From positions 434,001 to 498,000 of the forward strand of contig JANHCV010000016.1 of NCBI GenBank assembly GCA_025594325.1: a DNA stretch of 64,000 bases, read 5' to 3'. The notes below the pieces were generated by a model. That model was not told where the DNA came from. It did not search any database and worked only from the letters and a program-made list of their open reading frames with translations. Positions 38,194-52,399 of this stretch are shown piece by piece (the first letter of the stretch is position 1; every line of letters begins with the position of its first letter). Origin of the DNA: Blastocladiella emersonii ATCC 22665 (lineage: Eukaryota; Fungi; Blastocladiomycota). The position numbers and the translations under genes are program-made.

Positions 38194-38750
38194 GGCTGGT
38201 CGTGGTTGGCAGTAGCAGTAGCGGGTCTCAGTGGTGCGTGGTCTCGAGCTGGTGGTGATACATGGGCGGCCGCGGCCTGGTTGACGATGCAGAGAGGAAA
38301 GGAAGGATAGCAGAAGCGCCCGGCGAGGAAGGTTGCGCCTCGGTGGTGCACTATTCGGCGCGCTATCTGCGCCATGCCGCCCATCCGCATGGGGCCACGA
38401 TAAGCCACTGGCGCACGTGCGCTCACCCGACGCTGCCGCCAGCGCTCGTTCGCGCGCCGTCTTCTTCAGCGGTGGCCAAGTCATCCGCGCCGCGCCCTCC
38501 CCTCACGCTCACGCAGGTCGCTGCCCTGCCCCGCTCCACGCACCGACACTCGCCGCACCGCGTGCGCGAGACCCCGCTGCACCCAGTCCCCGCTCGCCCG
38601 GCACCCGCGCGCTGCCCCGCGCCGCCGAACCCGAGTCCTGCCTGCTGGTGTGTGTGTGCCTGTGTTGCACGCTGCTGGAGCGCAGCGTTTCGGGGAAGAT
38701 GGAGAGAGACTGAACATGGCTGCCGTCTAGTCATACCCACCGCCCGCACC

Positions 38751-41700
38751 ATGTCGTACGACGACCCGCTCGCCTCCTTCGGCGGCTTCGGCTCGCCGAC
38801 GCACGGCGGCGGCGCGTTTGGCGCGGGCTCCTCGTCCGAGCAGATCACGCCCGAGCACTGCTGGGCCGTCATCGACTCCTTCTTCGAGGGCAAGGGCCTC
38901 GTGTCGCAGCAGATCGACTCGTACGAGGACTTTGTCAAGAACGAGATCCAGGTCATTGTCGACGAGACCCCGCGCCTCGTGCTGCAGCAGGCGCCCAAGT
39001 ACACGGGCGACGACGCCGCCGGCCGCCTGCGCCACGAGATCTCGTTTGGCCAGGTCTACCTGTCCAAGCCGACCAACGTCGACACCTTCGGCATCCGCCC
39101 GCTCTTCCCACAAGAGGCGCGTGCCCGCAACATGACCTACACGGCCCCGCTGCTCATGGACATCACCAAGCGCACTCTGCGCGAGAACACCGACGCCGTC
39201 GACGGCGACTCGGACGACGTGCGCTGGCGGGCCACCGGCACCGAGACGTGCGAGCGCGTCAACGTCGGCAAGATCCCCGTCATGGTCGGCTCCGAGTTCT
39301 GCAACCTGCACGGCCTCGGCGAGCTCGAGCTCGCCGCCGCCGGCGAGTGCTCCTTCGACAAGGGCGGCTACTTCATCATCAACGGCTCCGAGAAGGTGAT
39401 CATCGCCCAGGAGCGCACCGCCACCAACACCGTCTTCGTCTTCTCCAAGTCGGCGCCCTCGCCCATCCTGTACCAGGCCGAGATCCGCTCGCAGGCCGAG
39501 ACGGGCGCCCGCACCATGTCGTCCTTCATCGTCAAGCTCAACCGCAGCAACGAGATCACCTGCTCGCTACCTTACATTCTCGAGGACATCCCCATTGTCA
39601 TCCTGTTCCGCGCGCTCGGCCTCGCCTCGGACCGCGAGATCCTCGAGCGCATCTGCTACGACTTTGGCGACGACCAGATGATGGAGATGCTCAAGCCGTG
39701 CATCGAGCACGCCGACATCATCCACGACCGCGAGGTCGCCCTCGACTACATTGGCCGCCGCGGCCGCAACACCAACCTGCCGCGCGACCAGCGCATCCGG
39801 TACGCGCACGACCTGCTCGAGCGCGAGCTGCTGCCGCACATTGGCACCACGCCCGGCGGCGAGACCCGCAAGGCCTTCTTCATCGGCTACATGGTCCACC
39901 GCATGCTGCTCGCCGCGCTCGGCCGCCGCCCCGTCGACGACCGCGACCACTTCGGGAAGAAGCGACTCGACCTCGCGGGCCCGCTCCTCGCCTCGCTGTT
40001 CAAGACCTTCTTCCAGAAGTTCGTCAAGGACATCAACCGCAACTTCCACCAGGCCGTCGAGAAGTCGGCCGAGGAGTCCTTCACCATCACCCAGTGCGTC
40101 AACCCCAATACCATCACCAACGGGCTCCGGTACGCGCTCGCCACGGGCAACTGGGGCGACCAGAAAAAGTTCATGGAGACGCGCGCCGGCGTGTCGCAGG
40201 TCCTCAACCGCTACACGTTCGCGTCCACGCTGTCGCACCTGCGCCGCCTCAACACGCCCATTGGCCGCGAGGGCAAGCTCGCCAAGCCGCGCCAGCTGCA
40301 CAACACGCACTGGGGCATGGTGTGCCCCGCCGAGACGCCCGAGGGCCAGGCGTGTGGGCTCGTCAAGAACCTCGCGCTCATGGCGTACGTGTCGGTCGGG
40401 TCCCCCTCGGGCCCCGTGCGCCAGGTGCTCGAGGAGTGGGCCGTCGAGAACCTCGAGGAGATCTCGTCGTCGTCGCTCATCCACCACACCAAGGTGTTTG
40501 TCAACGGCGCGTGGATCGGGATCCACCGCGAGCCCAACTCGCTGATCGAGACGCTGCGCGGGATGCGGCGCGAGAACACGGGCCTGCACCCGGAAATCTC
40601 CATCGTCCGCGACATCCGCGACAACGAGATCCGCATCTACACAGACACGGGCCGGATCATGCGGCCGCTGTTCGTGGTGCACGAGGACCAGCACCTGCTG
40701 CTGCGCAACGAGCACGTGGTGCGGCTCATGGACGAGATGGACGAGTACGGGTGGGAGGACCTGCTGCACGAGGGCATCGTCGAGTACATGGACACGGAGG
40801 AGGAGGAGATGGCCATGATCTGCATGACGCCCGAGGACCTGGCCGAGTCGCGCGGCGACCCCGTCGTCGACAAGTCCAAGACCGACAAGACGGCGCGGCT
40901 CAAGTCGCGCAAGCCCGGCGAGTACTGCAAGAAGTGGTCGCACTGCGAGATCCACCCGTCCATGATCCTCGGCATCTGCGCATCCATCGTCCCCTTCCCC
41001 GACCACAACCAGTCGCCGCGTAACACGTACCAGTCGGCCATGGGCAAGCAGGCCATGGGCGTGTACCTGACCAACTTTCAGCACCGCATGGACACGCTGG
41101 CCAACCTGCTGTACTACCCGCAGCGGCCGCTGGTCGCGACGCGCGCCATGAAGTACCTGCGGTTCCGCGAGCTCCCCGCGGGGCAGAACGCGATCGTGGC
41201 GATCGCGTGCTACTCGGGGTACAACCAGGAGGACTCGATCATCATGAACCAGTCGTCCATCGACCGCGGGCTGTTCCGGTCCATCTACTACCGGTCGTAT
41301 TTCGACGCGGAGAAGGCGGTCGGGGCCAAGGAGCACGAGACGTTCGAGAAGCCGACACGCGAGTCGACGCTCAAGCTGCGGCGCGGCGACTACTCGCTGC
41401 TCGACGAGGACGGCGTGATCGCGCCCGGCACGCTGGTCAAGGGCGAGGACATCATCATCGGCAAGACGGCGCCCCTCCCGCTGGACAGCAACGAGATGGG
41501 CACGCGCACGACGCAGACCAAGCGCGACGTGTCGACGGCGCTCAAGTCGACGGAGCGCGGGTACGTCGACCACGTGCTCGTGACGACCAACCAGGAGGGG
41601 TTCAAGTCGGTCAAGGTCCGCGTGCGGTCGACGCGCGTGCCGCAGATGGGCGACAAGTTTGCGTCGCGGCACGGGCAGAAGGGCACGGTGGGCATGACGT

Positions 41701-42380
41701 ACCGGCAGGAGGACATGCCGTTCACGGCGGACGGGATCACGCCCGACCTGATCGTCAACCCGCACGCGATCCCGTCGCGCATGACGATCGGGCATCTCGT
41801 CGAGTGCATCCTGTCCAAGGTCGGGTCGCTGGTCGGGACCGAGGGCGACGCGACGCCGTTCACGGACCTGACGCTGCAGGAGATCTCGGACCGGCTGCGG
41901 CAGTGCGGGTACCAGCAGCGCGGGTTCGAGATCATGTACAACGGGCACACGGGCAAGAAGCTGCAGGCGCAGGTCTTCTTCGGGCCGACCTACTACCAGC
42001 GGCTGAAGCACATGGTCGACGACAAGATCCACAGCCGCGCGCGCGGGCCGCAGCAGATCCTGACGCGGCAGCCGGTCGAGGGCCGGTCGCGCGACGGCGG
42101 GCTGCGGTTCGGCGAGATGGAGCGCGACTGCTTCATCGCGCACGGCGCGGCGCAGTTCCTGCGCGACCGGCTGTTTATCAACTCGGACGCGTTCCGCGTG
42201 CACGTGTGCGACCTGTGCGGCCTGTTCGCGATCGCGGCGCCCAACAAGTACGAGTGCAAGTCGTGCTCCAACTCGGCCAAGATCTCGCAGGTGTTCATGC
42301 CGTACGCCGCCAAGCTGCTGTTCCAGGAGCTCATGGCCATGAACATTGCGCCCCGGCTCGTGCTCATGGAGCGGACGTGA
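38751..42380 (+). CDS. RPB2: RNA polymerase II second-largest subunit, apparently intronless
   Basis: Motifs [63 protein letters not shown] and [11 protein letters not shown]. Confidence 0.99.
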
Positions 42381-42778
42381 GGCGTGTGTCTATGTGTGTG
42401 TGCGAATGGAATGGTTGATTATTGCTACTTTGGTCGTCATGGAATCGTGTCTCGCACCGCGCGCGCAAAGTGTCTCGCGGCGGCGACGGGGTCAGGCGAG
42501 TCAACGTGAGCCGGCGCGGGGCGCTGCAGCCAGAGCGCGCGAAGTGGAGCGAACCGAGGGGGGCCGGGGACCGGTATATAACCCAGCAGGGCCCCCCGAG
42601 GCCGTCTACGCTCCCGCACGCACGCATCGACACGCACTACCACGAAGCATCCGCCGCGCGGCCCGCTCGACGACGCGACCGATCGCGCGCGCTAACCGTT
42701 GCGCGACCGACCCGGCGCACCCTTCCCACGACTTGACTATATCTACACGACACCGTGCAACCCGTCGTCGTCGCCGCC

Positions 42779-44424
42779 ATGGATGTACGTCGCCATCGCT
42801 AGAGTGCGGAACCCGCGCGATCCGTGACTCACCCTTTCGTGGGCCTCTCCAGTTTGACGAGCTCATGCGGCTGGCCGAGCAGCAGTCGCGCGCGAGCGAC
42901 AGCGCGGCCGAGCAGCTCAAGGCCCGCAAGGAGGCCGACGAGGCGCGCCGCCGCCGCGAGGAGCGCGAGCGCCGCGACGAGCAGGACCGCATCCAGCGCA
43001 TGAAGGAGGCGGCCGAGCGCGCCCGCCAGCAGGCCGCCCGCGCCGACAAGGAGGTCGCGCTCGTTCGCCGTAACCTCGCGCCGTCGCCTGCACCCGCCGT
43101 GGCGGCTGCCGCGGCACCGGCTAGGGCGAAGCGGCGCGCCGAAGATGGTGACGGCGATCGGAGGCCGGCCAAACGGCCCGCGTCGTCCGCGTCGTCGCGG
43201 CCCACCAACGGCCGGTCCTCGGCTCCGCTCGGATCCCCGCCCGCGCGCCCGCTCTCGTTCGACGAGCTCATGAACGCCGCCGGCAAGGTCCGCCCCGACG
43301 ACCTGCGCGCCGTCACGGTGAAATCGGCGCGCACGCGGTCGCCGTCCCCACCACCACCTCGACCACGGCACCGCGACGATGCTACGCGGCGTGACCCTCC
43401 CCGCTCGCGGGCCGACGACCGTGACCGTGACCGTGACCGTGACCGTGACCGAGATCGCGCAAGGCCGCCACCATCTCGATCTGCTGCTGCTGGTTCATCC
43501 TCCTCGAGCGACCGCCCGCCCGTGCGACGATCGGCGGGCGACCTGCCTGCCCTTCCTTCCTCTGCCGCTTCGTCGTCGCGCCCACGCCCGCCAGTATCGC
43601 AGTCCGCCTCGGGCGTCGGCCGGCTCCCGCCACCACCACGGCCACGAAACCGTTCCCCTCCCCCAGTCCGGCGCCGGTCTCGATCCCGCTCGCCCGTGTC
43701 CCGCTCGTCGCGCGACCCGCCACCAAGGCGACCGCCAACAGACACCCGCCGCCCATCTGCCTCGTCTGCCGCACCCGCTCGCCGCCGCATGCGCTCCGTC
43801 TCGCCCCCGCCACCACCACGGCCGCGCGACCCGGCGTCGCGCCCGCCCGTGCAGCGGACTGGGTCCGGCTCGTCGTCGGCATCCGCGAGCCGACCGCCCG
43901 TGCAGCGCAGTACCAGCACGGTCCCCGGTGCACCACGACCGCCCGTCTCGCGGTCCGGTGCGTCGTCCGCGGGCGCTGTGGGCGGGGCTCGTCGACCACC
44001 CGTCTCCGCCGGTGCGTCGCGCCCACCCGTCTCGGCTCGCGCAGGCTCCGGTGCCGCGCCGCGCCGCCCGCTCCCGCCCGGCAGCCGCCGCCCCGACTCG
44101 CGCAGCACGGCGCGGCGCGGGCGCGACGCGTACGACGACGAGGACGACGACATGGACAGTTTCATCGAGGATGACGAGGACGACGACGGGTACGGGTACG
44201 GCCACGACGAGGACACGAACGTGTCGTCGGTGATCGCTGGCCTGTTCGGCCGCCGCCACCTCCGCCCCATCCTGTACTCGGACGACGAGGACATGGAGGC
44301 GTCGTACGGCGATGCCTTCAACGAGGAGAGGCGGTCTGAACTCCTCGCGCGGAAGGAGGACGAGCGCGCGGAGGCCGAGGAGCGCGAGCGCCGCAGAAAG
44401 CGCAAGGAGTTGGCGAGGAGGTGA
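42779..44424 (+). CDS. SPT2: Spt2 chromatin protein
   Basis: A 6-nt first exon and intron 42785-42852 give MDFDELM. The C-terminal DSFIEDD...DMEASY...EERRSELLARKED is the SPT2 signature. Confidence 0.8.
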
Positions 44425-44716: not shown

Positions 44717-46900
44717 TTACTCCTCGGCGTACGACGGGTCGACGAGCGACGGGACCGGCAGCCCCGCGCGGTGCTGGAGAATCTTCTTCTGGATGTGGGG
44801 CCAGAAGTGCTTGACGCCGTACGCCTCGACGAGCTCGGGCCGCGTCCAGTCGTTGCCGTGGACGTGGCCGCGGCACGTCGCGGCGCCGCAGTTGCACTTG
44901 AACAGCGGGCGAGGCTCAGCGTCGGCCGTCGCATAGTCGAACGTCAGCTCGTCGCCCTTCTTGATGTCGCGGCGCGCGACCATCGTGTCGTAGCCCGTGT
45001 AGACCAGGTTCGGGTCGCAGTTGTGGTTGGTGAAGTAGCTCGGGTCCTCGTCGTACAGCGGCGGCGCGATCCACACGTCGTCCTCGGCCTGCTCGCCCAT
45101 GTGGTTGATGAAGGCCACGCGCCACGGCGCCATGGCCGCAATGTCGACTTCGTGCCGCAGGTACGTCTCGATCGGCCCGCGGAATAGCACCTCGCCCGCC
45201 GCAATGTCGGCCCCGGCAAACTGCCCGCGGCCCGCCGTCGGCGACGAACGCACCTCGACCTTGGGGCTCATGTAGTAGTCGTTGCCGTGGTACCACAGGT
45301 CGACGAGTGGCGCGCCCGCGGCACCCGCAGTCTCGTAGCTCGGACGCCCGCGCGGCACCGTAGTCCCGACCGTCCGCTTCGCCGTCAGCTCCTCGGCCAG
45401 GAACCCGAGCACCTCCTCGGGCGATGTCTCCTTGGCCGCGTACGACGAGTACTCGGCCGCCGCGTATCCGAGCTTCGGGTACGCGCGCAGCGTGAAGTGG
45501 CCGTCGCGCAGCGTCGCCGAGACCATGACGGCAGCCGCCGCCGGGTCGTCCTTGAACGCCGCCAGGTTCTCGTCCTCCTCGTCCTCGTCGTCGTACACGT
45601 CGAGCGCGACCACGGTCGCGTGCGAGAACTCGAGTCCACGGCGCACCGCAGCCACCAGGTCCGACGTGTCGTCGAGCAGCTCCTTGTCGCAGTCGAAGTA
45701 CTCGCGCAGCAGCGTCGCCCCGGGCACGGAGTCCGCGCGCATGCTGCCGGCGTGCTCGGACGGCGCGTACGACTTCTTGGCATCCGCATCAGCGGGCCGG
45801 TGCGCGTCGAGGACCGCGCGCACGCGCTTGCGCAGGGCGAGCGGGAGGTGGAACATGCCGAGGTGCGACTCGCCGTCGTAGTGGTCGAGGTCCTCGGACC
45901 CGTCGAACACGCGGCGCCGGATGTTGGCGTCGACGAGCGCCGGGCTCATGGCCGTCGGCGCGAGGTGCAGGTCCGACTGCGTCGCGTAGTAGAACTGGAA
46001 TGTCGAACCGACGCTCTCGACGCGCTGCGCGGCAACGTGAACGTGCGGGAACTGGCGCGCAAGGGCAGGGAGGAGGCCGAGACTCGTCGTGTCGCGCTCC
46101 GCGGCCGCGACCACGCCGCCGGGCGCCAGGAGCACGTCCGCGACGTGCGACAGGTGCGCGGCCGACGCCGCGACGTGGTCGACGAGCACCACGTCGTACT
46201 TGGCGTGCTGGCCCGACGACGCCCGCGACAGGAACGACTCGACGGTGACGTGCTTGACGCGGGCTTTGCGCAGAATGTCCGACACGTCGTCGTACTTGAA
46301 CTCGGCCGTCGTGTTGGCCGCAACCTCGATGTCGTAGTACGACTCGACGCGCGCCGTGTCACGAGCGGCGGCGCCCGACGCCGTCTCTTGGTCGAGGCCG
46401 GACACCCACACGATGTCGGTTAGCGTGAAGTGGCGAAGCGCCTCGGCGACCACCGACGCGCCGAGCGGGCCGAGGATGAGCACCTTGCGGGGCGTCGGGT
46501 CTAAGGCGCGCACCGTGTCAGTTCATGGAGGGCTTGCCGCTGCAGAGCCAAGTAACGTACGCCAGAGAAGCGCTGCATGCGTGAGCGACTCGGACCACAC
46601 GCGCTCGTCCGCGGGGCACAGCTGCGGCACGCCGCCGAGGACGAGGCAGTCGGCCGTCCGCGTCGGAGTGCGCGAGGCCGCCGCGGGTGCGGGCGCCGGA
46701 CTCGGGGCCAGGAACGACGCGGGCTGGATGGACTGCGGCGTGCCGTCGAGGTTGACGGTGATGGAGATGTAGCCGAGGCTCGCAAGCGTGGCGACCGACG
46801 CCAGGACCGCTAGGGCGGCAGTACCCGTCCACGACGACGCCGATGGCGCGACCTTGGAAGTCGAAGGCCGTGACGACGCGGCGCGAGACGTGGTTGACAT
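44717..46900 (-). CDS. Fusion A (707 aa): N-terminal TM anchor, degenerate spermidine-synthase-like domain, degenerate prokaryotic-type AdoMetDC domain, SET + post-SET methyltransferase
   Basis: Intron 46501-46560 gives ESLTHAALLW-HPTPRKVLILG. AdoMetDC-like segment EYFDCDKELLDD...LRDGHFTLRAYPKLGYAA...PRG. SET motifs GRGQFA, FTNHNCDPN, ELTFDY and CNCGAATCRG. Confidence 0.85.
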
Positions 46901-47334: not shown

Positions 47335-49417
47335 ATGTCCGCCGGCCCGCCCACCAACCTCGACACCGCACCGGCGGTGCCTGCGCCGCCCGACTCGGCC
47401 CAGGTCCCCGTCGACGACATGCACCGGCTTCCCGCTGCGGACTTTGGCCTATACGACTTCGCCGGCCACGACTCGGTCATCTTCCAGAACACGGGCCTGT
47501 TCGACGTCCAGCTCGCCTCGCTCGTCCGCCCCCTCGAGGACACCACGTACCTGCACCTACTGGAGCGCATGTTCGAGCCCAACGCAGGCTACTCGCACGA
47601 GACGGACGAGCGCGTCGCGACGCCCGAGGCGCTGCTCGCGCGCGCCTCCGAGTCGTTCGATCTCGCCGCAGACGAGCAGCGCCGCGCGCGTCCTGGCTAC
47701 CTGTCGCGCCTCACCTCGTTCGCCCTGCTCGCGTGCAAGAAGCGAGTCTACGACGCAGCCCGCCCGCTGTGGCTCTCGGTCATGGGCCCCGAGGCCCCTC
47801 TCTGTACGCTCGCTCGTCCTTGCCGCCGCGCCGTGGCGCACCGCCCCCGTCACCTCCGCGGCCAGCACGCTGACCCGTCCCCGCACGTGCCCAAACAATC
47901 ATGTAGTCGCCAGCAAGGACTCGCGCCCTGTGCCGATCCAGAACGGCGCTCCTGTCGCCGCCGCCGCCGCCGCCACCGCGGCCGAGGCGCGGACCGAGGC
48001 CGTGTGGACCTTCAGCAACACGCACATGCACGCCTGCTTCGCGGCCACGAACGCGCAGCTCGACCGCATCATCGCCACCCTCCCGCCCGTCACCGACTTG
48101 CGCGCCACGGTCACGCTCGCCACCCGCGCCCCGCCCGGCCCTACTGCGCGGTACGCGTACTTCAGCCCGCGCCAGCCGCACCACACGTCGATGGCGCGGG
48201 CCATGCCCGGCGCAGCCACCGGCAACGTCACCATGCCCGTCGTCGTGGGCGACGTCGTCCCCGTCAACGGCGTGTACTACTGGTCGTACCTCGTCGTGCC
48301 CCATGGCGTGGTCCCTGGCCAGCACCTCGCCGACGTTCTCGCCAGCACTGGCGTCGCCGCCGCCGCCCGCGTCGACATCCACAACACCGGTATCCCCGCG
48401 CAGGCCCGCCTCGTCCTACTCGAGGATCGCCCCGACCTCAACCTAGCCTCGTGGACGCCGCCCAACTTGGCGGCCCCGGTGACCGTCGTCGCCGAATCCG
48501 AGCGGTCGTACGTGGGCTACGGGCTCGACGCCGAGATCGAGGGCCTGCGTCGGTGCGTGTCGTCGTCTTGAGTAACCGCGTCTGCCGCCCACTGACCTTT
48601 CCGCTCCCGCACCACCTCCAGGCTCGCGTGGCCCGTGGCCGTCCTGCTCAAGTACAACCCGATCGCCGAGAACACGGACGTGACCATCGAGCCCCGCGAC
48701 AAGCTCGCCGCCGCCGCAGGAGATGAGGAGGAGGAGCAGAAGACTGGGACCGCGGGCGGCGACAAAATGGATGTCGACCCGACCGCGCCGCGGCAGCGCA
48801 CCAGCATCGAAAAGGAGACCGGCGCGGCCGAGATCGACGCCAAGGACGCGGCGTACCTTCTTCGGCTCGGCACCCGCACCGCGGCGGACTACCTCGTCTC
48901 GTCGCGGCGCGGCAAGGCCAAGGCCAAGGACCGCGGCACCAGTTCGTCGGCACCGTCGTCGACGGCGGCCTCGGGCCGCGCACCACCCGCCGCATCGGCG
49001 TCCAACCCGCAAGCACGCGCCGCCGCCGGTCGTAACCCGAGCGGCAAGCGGGACCAGTTCTACAAGCGCCGGCAAGCGCTCGTCAAGGAGTCCGTGACGT
49101 GCGCCGAGGAGATCGCCAAGGGCAACCGCCCCCGCACCACGCCGCGCATCGAGAACCACCTGCTGCTCAACGAGATGCGCGACAATGGCGACCCGTCCTA
49201 CGCGCTCGTGTACAAGTCCAACAACAAGTACTACCTGTACGCCGCGCCCGGGCGCCCGCGTGGGGCCATGGACCAGTGGGTCCGCAAGACGGTGCGCACG
49301 CAGACCGCGTACGAGCTCGAGCTCAAGCACAACAACTTTCCGACCTTCGAGGTGCTGACCAAGGCGCTCAAGGGCGCGCCGTTCCTCGACATGGAGCTCA
49401 TCTTCGGCCTGTGCTGA
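47335..49417 (+). CDS. Hypothetical 636-aa protein, 3 exons, with C-terminal MADS-box-like segment
   Basis: Introns 47804-47906 and 48553-48621 join three ORF pieces in frame (1911 nt). NPSGKRDQFYKRRQALVK and YALVYKSNNKYYLYA resemble the MADS helix and beta-hairpin. Confidence 0.6.
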
Positions 49418-50689: not shown

Positions 50690-52399
50690 ATGGCCAACAT
50701 CGTGACTCTCGACAAACTGCTCAAGTCGCCGCCCGCGTCGGCGCCGGCACCGTCACCAGCGCCGCGCATGGAGCGCCGAAAGTCGGTGGTCTCGTCAACG
50801 TCAGTCGTGAGCTACTGGGGCGAGCAGCGCACCATCCTGATGCTGTGCGGGCTCCTGCTGTGCTCGGTGCTCGTCAACGTCTTCTTCTCGTCGACCATCC
50901 AGCCCGCCACCTTCGCGCTCAACAACGCCTGGAGCAAGCGCCCGAACCTCGTGTGCGACATGGACGCTATCAGCAAGTCGCACCTGCCGACGGGCAAGCA
51001 GTACGTTTCTCTCGCAGGAAGTGATGGCCGCAATGATCATGGACTCACCTCGCGCACTCGCACGTCTCACAGCCACATGGTCGACCTGTACGGCGTGCCC
51101 GTCGAGAACGTGCGGTTCCTCGAGGAGTCCAAGATGCTGACCGAGGTGGCGTCGTACATTGCCAAGGCCGGGCTCACGCTGCTCGACTACTCGGCCTACC
51201 ACTTCGACTGCGGAGGCATCACGGCCGTGTTCCTGCTGTCCGAGTCGCACGTGTCGTTCCACTCGTGGCCCGAGCATGGGTTCGTCGCCCTCGACGTTTA
51301 CACGTGCGGCAAGGGCCGCCCCGAGCACATTGTCGACAAGTTCAAGGCGCTGCTGCAGCCGGCGGCCGTCCGCCACACGTTCCTCGAGCGCGGCGCCGAC
51401 CGCCACCTCGCCATGACCACTAACTCGGGCAACTTTGGCGGCATCGCCGCGAACGAGACCGAGTCGGCGGCGCCCATCGTGCGCCCGGTTGTCGCGTCCC
51501 CGCCGGCCAGCGCCGCCGAGGCCGCTCCCGTTCCCAGCAAGGCCGACGAGGTGGTGCAGCTCGCTCCCGGCCGCGTGTTCCCCGACGTGGCGCCGGTGGC
51601 GGCGACCGAGATCATGACCAAGAAGCTGATGGGCCCGTCGGCGCCCATGGACCTGTGCGTCAACGGCGACGGGCCCGAGGACGACTGCCTCCTGCTGCGC
51701 AACGCGGTGGTGCACGCGGACGTGCAGACGCCGTACCAGCGCATCGAGATTGTCGATACGCAGACGCTGGGCCGGTGCATGCTGCTGGACCGCGTGGTGC
51801 AGTTCTGCGAGGAGGACAACCACATCTACACGTCGCAGATCACGGACCGCGCCATGGCGACGCTCCCCGCGGACGACGGCCGCAAGCTCAACGTGACGAT
51901 CATCGGCGGCGGCGACGGGTGGGTGGCGTCGTACCTGCTGGACGCGTACGCGGACCGCATTGAGTCGATCCGGATCGTCGACATTGACGAGCAGGTGGCC
52001 AAGCTGACGCGCACCTTCTTCGACCCCGAGGGCGCAGCGTGGTCGTTCACGGACCCGCGCGTGCACTGGACATTCGTCGACGCCAACGTGTGGCTGGCCG
52101 ACCTGCCCGCGGGCGTCGCGCCCGGGTCCATGGACCTCGTCATCATCGACTGCACCGACCACACGGCCGAAGCCTCGAAGGTCCTGTACACGCGCGACTT
52201 TTACGCGAACGTGCGGCGGCTGATGCGCGCCGGCGCGGCGCTCACGCAGCAGGTCAACACGGTCGACCCCGACTACGCGCCCTTCTTCGACACGGTGCGC
52301 GCGCAGTGGGCCGACGCCGGGCTCAACGGGCTCTCCGAGTGGACCGCGTACATGCAGTCGTTCTCGGGCATGTCGCTCTTCTGGCTGGCGCACGCGTAA
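50690..52399 (+). CDS. Fusion B (545 aa): N-terminal TM anchor, prokaryotic class 1B S-adenosylmethionine decarboxylase, aminopropyltransferase (spermidine synthase family)
   Basis: Intron 51001-51072 gives GKHHMVDLYG. AdoMetDC motifs LLSESHVSFHSWPEHGFVALDVYTCG. Aminopropyltransferase motifs TPYQRIEI, MLLD, IIGGGDG, VDID and DLVIIDCTD. TM segment ILMLCGLLLCSVLVNVFF. Confidence 0.92.
   Translation: MANIVTLDKLLKSPPASAPAPSPAPRMERRKSVVSSTSVVSYWGEQRTILMLCGLLLCSVLVNVFFSSTIQPATFALNNAWSKRPNLVCDMDAISKSHLPTGKQYVSLAGSDGRNDHGLTSRTRTSHSHMVDLYGVPVENVRFLEESKMLTEVASYIAKAGLTLLDYSAYHFDCGGITAVFLLSESHVSFHSWPEHGFVALDVYTCGKGRPEHIVDKFKALLQPAAVRHTFLERGADRHLAMTTNSGNFGGIAANETESAAPIVRPVVASPPASAAEAAPVPSKADEVVQLAPGRVFPDVAPVAATEIMTKKLMGPSAPMDLCVNGDGPEDDCLLLRNAVVHADVQTPYQRIEIVDTQTLGRCMLLDRVVQFCEEDNHIYTSQITDRAMATLPADDGRKLNVTIIGGGDGWVASYLLDAYADRIESIRIVDIDEQVAKLTRTFFDPEGAAWSFTDPRVHWTFVDANVWLADLPAGVAPGSMDLVIIDCTDHTAEASKVLYTRDFYANVRRLMRAGAALTQQVNTVDPDYAPFFDTVRAQWADAGLNGLSEWTAYMQSFSGMSLFWLAHA

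Follow-up and report, generated by a model that had tools for sequence, protein, structure and literature searches.

A putative membrane-anchored SET methyltransferase of zoosporic fungi that carries two apparently inactivated polyamine-synthesis domains and whose gene is paired with that of an intact polyamine-synthesis fusion

Why would two enzyme domains that have apparently lost their catalytic residues be retained in one protein, joined to a third domain in which all such residues are in place? The question is raised by a gene in a 64,000-nucleotide (nt) stretch of GC-rich, eukaryotic DNA of Blastocladiella emersonii ATCC 22665 (hereafter the window, to which all coordinates refer unless a locus number is given). 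The product of this gene, which we call fusion A, consists, from the N- to the C-terminus, of a signal-anchor, an aminopropyltransferase fold, a class-1b S-adenosylmethionine decarboxylase (AdoMetDC) fold and a bacterial-type SET domain. The window also contains the gene for fusion B, which combines a signal-anchor with intact AdoMetDC and aminopropyltransferase domains. We propose that fusion A is a membrane-anchored SET methyltransferase built on a fossil polyamine-synthesis module and that it forms, together with fusion B, an ancient two-gene unit, a reading to which we give a probability of roughly 0.55. The evidence that carries this proposal is the pattern of replacements and constraint in the domains of fusion A and the conservation of the gene pair in two fungal phyla.

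The three domains of fusion A

The AdoMetDC-like domain is matched by Pfam AdoMet_dc (PF02675) with an E-value of 2.4e-8 (34.7 bits against a cut-off of 25, model positions 3-107 of 107), and a profile of the orthologues matches the AdoMetDC of Thermotoga maritima (1tlu/1tmi) with an E-value of 1.6e-6. A model of this domain alone, with a predicted local distance difference test score (pLDDT) of 88, superimposes on 1tmi with TM-scores of 0.76/0.88 and a root-mean-square deviation of 2.3 A; after the bacterial enzymes, the next structural match is the N-terminal domain of human spermine synthase (3c6k). A class-1b domain of this kind is half of a two-sheet sandwich and is normally paired with a second copy. 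In all five blastoclad orthologues, the ESH motif at which the precursor of the pyruvoyl group is cleaved is replaced by (D/E/K)GH; in the T. maritima numbering, Gly stands in place of Ser63, Arg in place of His68 and Tyr or Phe in place of Cys83, and the Arg (Arg452 in fusion A) is invariant among the orthologues. Toms and colleagues are said to have found in 2004 that His68 of the T. maritima enzyme is needed for processing and that Cys83 is catalytic. Equivalent losses are seen in the chytrid relatives (n=13), in which the Ser is replaced by Gly or another non-hydroxyl residue.

The aminopropyltransferase-like domain, of a Rossmann-type fold, is recognized at the level of profiles and structures: a five-orthologue profile matches SpeE of Thermus (1uir/3anx) with an E-value of ~1e-21 (chain residues 44-285) and thermospermine synthase (TSPS; 6bq2) with an E-value of 4e-20, and the corresponding part of the AlphaFold model of fusion A (pLDDT 77, predicted TM-score 0.75) matches TSPS/SpeE structures in Foldseek with an E-value of 8e-13 and TM-scores, by target, of 0.58-0.69. 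The Pfam family PF01564 matches the orthologues P0005, P0006, P0009 and P0044; the B. emersonii protein itself has no match to this family. The N-terminal beta-sheet oligomerisation domain PF17284 has no Pfam match in fusion A and is matched by fusion B; in the model of fusion A, residues 47-58 form short strands of low confidence, and the alignment with Thermus SpeE begins at residue 44. The GGGDG loop, whose Asp in the active enzymes binds the amine of the aminopropyl group of decarboxylated S-adenosylmethionine (dcSAM), reads GPLGA, GPLGP, GALGG or GSLNA in the blastoclads, with its Asp missing throughout. At the end of strand 2, Ser, Val or Gln stands where the active enzymes have an acidic ribose-binding residue, and the catalytic DxxD motif (DSTD-type) has lost its second Asp. 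The loop Asp is mostly absent from the chytrid relatives as well. An exception is P0006, a full-length member of the A family from a Logan assembly, in which a loop of the GDGG type (AGTGDGG) is retained beside a dead AdoMetDC site; in a tree of the aminopropyltransferase domain this protein branches first within the A clade, so the loop may have been lost in steps.

An earlier note on this DNA, made from the sequence alone, had listed four of these replacements, namely, ESH to DGH at 45497-45508, the FTCG cysteine to SSYA, GGGDG to GPLGA and DSxD to DHVA, and had assigned the two folds to the protein. Alignment places all four as described, down to the exact range of the first, and the profile searches and predicted-structure matches recover both folds.

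Conceivably, the two domains might not be dead at all, if catalytic residues have migrated or if the pockets bind S-adenosylmethionine (SAM), dcSAM or a polyamine and gate the SET domain as an allosteric sensor. The first Asp of DxxD (D221) and an acidic residue matching Glu11 of T. maritima (REY/RDY) are indeed retained, some chytrid relatives have a Gly-Ser that lies one residue beyond the former cleavage site, the acidic residue that binds ribose persists in some, and P0006 has the loop mentioned above. However, near this site the B. emersonii protein has a single Ser, Thr or Cys, T450 (GHFTL), which lies three residues beyond the Gly at a position that is not consistently a hydroxyl or thiol residue in the wider family (Val in P0006, Ala in P0010, Cys in P0014, Gly in P0044), and the downstream Ser of some chytrids is not found family-wide. 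With a Leu in the glycine loop and the ribose-binding acid lost in the blastoclads, retention of function in these pockets appears very improbable. The replacements instead support the prediction that both N-terminal domains are catalytically dead in all five blastoclads and in essentially all chytrid relatives.

The state of the SET domain is quite different. It is matched by Pfam SET (PF00856) with an E-value of 1.8e-10, and the motifs AGRGQFA, NHNCDPN, ELTFDY and CNCGAATC are invariant among the blastoclads, as is the catalytic Tyr; C608, C649, C651 and C656, which comprise the Cys of NHxC and the post-SET CxCxxxxC, are invariant even when bacterial relatives are included. These relatives, encoded, for example, in metagenome-assembled genomes of Actinomycetota, Paceibacterota and Omnitrophota, are small stand-alone SET proteins (about 170-220 amino acids, aa) that have in common with fusion A the SET core, the post-SET CxCxxxxC and a GxDW...PELQERY...F.P.I tail and, unlike fusion A, possess neither an N-terminal extension nor a membrane anchor. 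Those of 170-195 aa are 33-41% identical to the SET domain of fusion A in MAFFT alignments and up to 44% identical by phmmer, and the structural comparison with the small bacterial proteins gives a TM-score of 0.75. We know of no polyamine-enzyme neighbour of these bacterial proteins. The intactness of the SET motifs and the bacterial likeness of the tail, both pointed out in the earlier note, are borne out. By these comparisons, the SET domain is shown to be the sole plausible catalytic centre of fusion A, its activity being a predicted one.

The constraint on the three parts can be compared among the orthologues, which are found in B. britannica, Catenaria, Sorochytrium and Paraphysoderma (42-58% identity) and, among the chytrids, in Spizellomycetales, Cladochytriales and Lobulomycetales. 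The mean column identity among the blastoclads is 55% for the aminopropyltransferase part, 53% for the AdoMetDC part and 78% for SET, and the two inactivated domains are 37-59% identical across this group. These domains contain invariant blocks, RRxxDGxEDLDHYDGxxH, GHxTxR and AKRxxGxxxRG, some of which lie around the dead AdoMetDC site. Between B. emersonii and Catenaria, the Nei-Gojobori (NG86) estimates of nonsynonymous divergence (dN) are 0.46, 0.34 and 0.18 for the aminopropyltransferase, AdoMetDC and SET parts, respectively, with a synonymous divergence (dS) of ~1-1.4; the corresponding dN/dS values of at most 0.47, 0.27 and 0.13 are upper bounds only because dS is saturated or undefined (0.8-1.5). 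The inactivated domains evolve 2-3 times faster than SET, yet far from neutrally. The earlier note had singled out dN/dS across orthologues as a check on its interpretation, and the outcome is constraint; the substitution patterns show the inactivated domains to be under purifying selection, apparently as structural parts.

The gene pair formed with fusion B

In nine of the ten loci examined in Blastocladiomycota and Chytridiomycota, the genes for fusions A and B are arranged head-to-head, and the genes that flank the pair differ in every genome. The two are immediate neighbours in eight genomes, those of Catenaria (locus L001), Paraphysoderma (L002), Sorochytrium (L003), B. britannica (L004), Fimicolochytrium (L006), Cladochytrium (L007), Spizellomyces punctatus (L009) and Lobulomyces (L010), with intergenic gaps of roughly 0.45-1.7 kb. 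Because this is the sole conserved micro-synteny at these loci across two fungal phyla, it constitutes strong evidence of functional or regulatory coupling between A and B. The synteny of the pair is, as far as we can tell from the literature, in which we found no description of this fungal family or of the A-B gene pair, a new result.

Fusion B has every appearance of an active enzyme. Its AdoMetDC domain carries the motifs LSESH..HSWPE..YTCG and its aminopropyltransferase domain the motifs GGGDGW and DCTDHT, and the orthologues of B retain the anchor and all catalytic motifs. An apparent loss of the AdoMetDC domain from B in Paraphysoderma and Cladochytrium proved to be due to truncated gene models, of 332 and 319 aa, respectively: tblastn finds the AdoMetDC exons directly upstream, at L002 8162-8616 and L007 8762-9106.

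The relationship between the two fusions is a remote one. Direct comparison by hhalign gives an E-value of 2e-5 for the aminopropyltransferase domains and of 5e-4, over 33 columns, for the AdoMetDC domains, and BLASTP gives only 0.02; together with the greater proximity of the A aminopropyltransferase to Thermus SpeE/ACL5, these values led us to reject the possibility that A is a recent duplicate or rearrangement of B. In the tree of the aminopropyltransferase domain, which took in the A family, the B family, metagenomic B-like proteins and bacterial proteins, A and B are each monophyletic (support of 99 and 100, respectively, in the Shimodaira-Hasegawa-like approximate likelihood-ratio test), and with the single type of outgroup in this tree a sister relationship between A and B is not resolvable. 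Metagenomic eukaryote-like AdoMetDC-aminopropyltransferases (P0184 and P0186-P0191) group with the fungal B proteins in one clade and share the same unusual GGGDGW loop; at the one metagenomic B-like locus checked (L011), there is no A-like gene within 10 kb.

Two predicted features are common to A and B. Each carries a signal-anchor near its N-terminus, flanked by positive charges on the N-terminal side, and the predicted topology is the same for A and B; both also have a pair of cysteines around a hairpin that precedes the DE/ED motif (in fusion B at about 51770-51805), with a spacing of 10 residues in the two B. emersonii proteins. The Cys pair is present in all members of the A and B families that we have seen and in the metagenomic B-like GGGDGW proteins, and it is absent from the sampled bacterial aminopropyltransferases. 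It is a possible disulfide staple and would fit the residence of A and B in the same oxidising compartment.

Could fusion A, nevertheless, be a SET methyltransferase that acts independently of B, with its inactivated domains serving as a scaffold or stalk for homo-oligomerisation, its targets being lysines of secretory or wall proteins unrelated to the product of B, and the adjacency of the genes reflecting a shared promoter or an accident? The dead AdoMetDC-like domain of human spermine synthase (PMC12803844), to which that of A is structurally similar (3c6k), purely dimerises, the small stand-alone SET proteins form a broad family with no polyamine link, and in Gaertneriomyces an A-like paralogue lies away from B. 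However, the retention of the A-B pair, and of nothing else, across two phyla in which all flanking genes differ is hard to explain without functional coupling; the invariant blocks lie inside the dead pockets; and diatoms, as discussed below, have proteins in which all three domain types are fused. We therefore regard an independent SET enzyme as unlikely.

Several other observations were made around the pair. In Lobulomyces (L010 1-6650), one gene model of 1766 aa joins an A-like gene (Spermine_synth and SET) to an adaptin/HEAT protein, probably through mis-fusion. A gene for ornithine decarboxylase antizyme lies 3 kb from the A orthologue of Sorochytrium (L003 15230-16043), an ATP-grasp (Dala_Dala_lig_C) gene abuts B in B. 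britannica (L004 6257-7873), and a SET protein of Mesostigma (P0016) also contains a Dala_Dala_lig_C domain; each of these may be a coincidence.

Gene model and features of the locus

The coordinates of the features in the window are collected in Table 1. The intron of fusion A must be spliced because it contains an in-frame stop codon, and the spliced product of 707 aa agrees in every residue with P0001, the protein annotated for B. emersonii ATCC 22665. The intron splits the His codon of LLxH|PxPR, and an intron occupies the same phase-1 site in Catenaria, Sorochytrium and Paraphysoderma; in the B. britannica orthologue, the reading frame breaks at the residue that matches this site. The gene model is supported by this position, common to the orthologues; a look-up of RNA-seq runs returned none, only DNA contigs of the source sample. 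The earlier note had taken the clean frame and intron to mean that the gene is not a decaying pseudogene, and the orthologues, the kept intron position and the dN values agree with it: decay can be rejected given an intact frame, a product identical to an annotated protein, orthologues in two phyla, the kept intron position and a dN far below saturation. The name 'putative protein serine/threonine kinase', given by NCBI to P0001 and to the Sorochytrium protein P0004, is clearly wrong; a kinase domain is absent from both.

Table 1. Features of fusion A, fusion B and the gene between them in the B. emersonii window
Feature	Coordinates	Strand	Remarks and basis
Fusion A, exon 1	46561..46900	-	ATG at 46900; 340 nt; predicted cytosolic N-terminal tail, signal-anchor, linker and start of aminopropyltransferase-like domain
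Fusion A, intron	46501..46560	-	60 nt; GT-AG (GTACGT...TTAG); phase 1; in-frame TGA
Fusion A, exon 2	44717..46500	-	coding to 44720; stop codon 44717-44719
Hydrophobic signal-anchor, residues 24-48	46757..46831	-	helix 22-41 in model; R/K on N-terminal side only
Hairpin with Cys pair C85...C95 ahead of DE motif	46588..46648	-	alignment
Predicted aminopropyltransferase-fold pseudo-enzyme domain, residues 85-345, interrupted by intron	45806..46648	-	profile and Foldseek matches; Atlas matches on residues 79-347
GPLGA in place of dcSAM-binding GGGDG loop	46457..46471	-	alignment
DHVA in place of DxxD	46169..46180	-	first Asp (D221) invariant, second lost
Predicted class-1b AdoMetDC-fold pseudo-enzyme domain, residues 372-498	45347..45727	-	PF02675, 1tlu profile, model against 1tmi
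RDGH at ESH self-cleavage site	45497..45508	-	Ser that is precursor of pyruvoyl group is Gly447
SSYA at FTCG site	45437..45448	-	active-site Cys is Tyr
SET domain, post-SET zinc cysteines and C-terminal helical tail, residues 512-695	44756..45307	-	Pfam, motifs, TM-score 0.75
NHNCDPN	45008..45028	-	SET motif
ELTFDY	44933..44950	-	SET motif
CNCGAATC	44873..44896	-	SET-domain motif, intact
Intervening gene, 636 aa, no Pfam match, in B. emersonii only	47335-49417 (L008 7484-9566)	+	annotation
Fusion B: signal-anchor, intact AdoMetDC, intact aminopropyltransferase	50690..52399	+	annotated product P0170
Fusion B, single intron, ~72 nt, in-frame	near 51000-51072	+	gene model

By the positive-inside rule, the charges that flank the hydrophobic segment of fusion A suggest a type II topology that would place most of the protein on the luminal or exoplasmic side. 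An N-x-T sequon in an insert of the AdoMetDC-like domain (alignment columns ~56-60) is common to the A-family members of the chytrids and missing from those of the blastoclads; such a sequon would be in keeping with a luminal, glycosylated protein. The downstream neighbours of fusion A are ordinary housekeeping genes, for RPB2, the second-largest subunit of RNA polymerase II (38262-42380, plus strand), and for the chromatin protein SPT2 (42346-44424, plus strand).

Possible functions and precedents

How might an inactivated polyamine-synthesis module serve a SET methyltransferase? Under the reading that we prefer, A and B probably act together and the SET domain of A probably faces the lumen. 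Fusion B would make dcSAM and aminopropylate an amine acceptor in a secretory compartment, and the SET domain of A would N-methylate the product of B or, alternatively, a lysine within the same target. Oligomerisation, of A with itself or with B, would fall to the dead AdoMetDC half-sandwich of A, the amine substrate may sit in the dead aminopropyltransferase pocket, and the two genes would be transcribed divergently from a shared upstream region. The luminal topology, the methyl acceptor, the contact between A and B and the binding of ligands by the inactivated domains are all what we infer.

The combination of domains and the use of dead AdoMetDC folds are already known elsewhere, and the diatoms provide the closest parallel for the former. 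In diatoms, as far as the summary in PMC3820600 goes, Michael 2011 (FEBS Lett 585:2627; cf. PMC6356823, PMC12803844) described AdoMetDC-aminopropyltransferase fusions, sometimes with a histone-type N-methyltransferase, and proposed that they function in long-chain polyamine synthesis and N-methylation. Fusion A resembles these proteins in that it has three domain types in one chain, a bacterial-type AdoMetDC and aminopropyltransferase, a SET domain and predicted secretory targeting. The nearest ESM-Atlas cluster to fusion A is a diatom family whose members carry Spermine_synth and AdoMet_dc, with SET present in 30% of them (score 0.94), and among the matches in the AlphaFold database (AFDB) are diatom SET/PABS proteins that are colinear with A over its aminopropyltransferase and AdoMetDC parts. 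A word-index search with an 18-sequence alignment that was aimed at diatom sequences returned only two members that were already known. Unlike in the diatom fusions as described, the synthesis domains of A are apparently dead and the active AdoMetDC-aminopropyltransferase is the product of a separate, divergent gene; and, unlike the diatoms, the hosts of A are non-silicifying zoosporic fungi. A more specific and tentative version of the proposal would be that zoosporic fungi carry the diatom-type machine in split form, with B and A assembling through their AdoMetDC half-sandwiches and making N-methylated, possibly long-chain, polyamines or aminopropyl- and methyl-lysines on secreted or wall proteins.

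For the retention of a dead AdoMetDC fold as a structural element, a known case is human spermine synthase, in which the N-terminal domain is a dead AdoMetDC fold that is needed for dimerisation (PMC12803844). In this enzyme, as in A, the dead domain is kept beside an aminopropyltransferase fold, but in spermine synthase the latter is active and C-terminal to the dead domain, whereas in A the order is reversed, both domains are apparently dead and SET is the predicted working enzyme. The bacterial AdoMetDC-aminopropyltransferase fusions (Green et al. 2011; PMC12803844) also contain the same two folds in one chain; fusion B is of this type, with AdoMetDC first and both domains active, in contrast to A, with the reversed order, the inactivated sites and the additional SET domain.

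Another precedent is the prozyme of trypanosomatids (5tvm; PMC5201418), a dead protein of the AdoMetDC fold that, similarly to A, exists alongside an active AdoMetDC and has been maintained by selection. The prozyme is of class 2, stands alone and is a paralogue of its partner, whereas A is of class 1b, remote from B and contained within a three-domain membrane protein; a dead copy accompanies an active enzyme of the same fold in nine of the fungal genomes, and close paralogy between the two partners, as found for the prozyme, is lacking. Fusion A could, by analogy, be an activator, whose inactivated AdoMetDC and/or aminopropyltransferase domains form heteromers with B and switch on or tune it while the SET domain merely rides along. 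This scenario accommodates the maintenance of the divergent pair in nine genomes, the shared anchor topology predicted for A and B, the pairing of class-1b AdoMetDC with a second copy (the T. maritima dimer 1tlu being the top structural match of A) and the gathering of invariant residues at the dead site (GHxTxR, AE), and it has a further precedent in Victivallis, where a degraded SpeD is fused to an active one (PMC10407285). It is less easily reconciled with the remoteness of the domains of A from those of B, the aminopropyltransferase of A being far nearer to Thermus SpeE/ACL5 (E 1e-21) than to B (E 2e-5), with the missing match to PF17284 in A and with the presence of every catalytic residue in B, given that bacterial fusions of the B type are active alone (PMC12803844). 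Moreover, SET is the most conserved part of A and so an unlikely passenger. On balance, we find the role of an activator improbable. That the reciprocal domain order of A and B would favour their pairing, as suggested in the earlier note, is purely conjectural, and plain dimerisation, known from human spermine synthase, is the better-documented role of a dead class-1b AdoMetDC fold (PMC12803844).

Several considerations weigh against our proposal of a joint A-B unit with a SET methyltransferase at its core. In B. emersonii itself, the pair is kept but is separated by one gene (locus L008), and the Gaertneriomyces A-like paralogue P0010 does not adjoin B. Gene adjacency shows co-inheritance or co-regulation and is not proof of a shared pathway. 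The AFDB and Atlas matches to the diatom proteins are to be taken as leads only. In the literature, we found no N-methylated or long-chain polyamines reported for these fungi.

If the proposal is correct, secretory-pathway polyamine synthesis and N-methylation would not be a speciality of diatoms but an old eukaryotic capability, present at the base of the fungi, and an N-methylated polyamine chemistry so far tied only to biosilica-forming algae would extend to zoosporic fungi. The pair would thus point to polyamine-derived molecules or modified proteins of chytrids and blastoclads that are not yet known. Fusion A would also be a clear case of two consecutive pseudo-enzyme domains accompanied by an active third domain, with the active counterparts of the former encoded next door. 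One of the fungi with the pair, Spizellomyces punctatus, is genetically tractable, and fusions A and B offer a natural system for the study of how dead enzyme folds are re-used.

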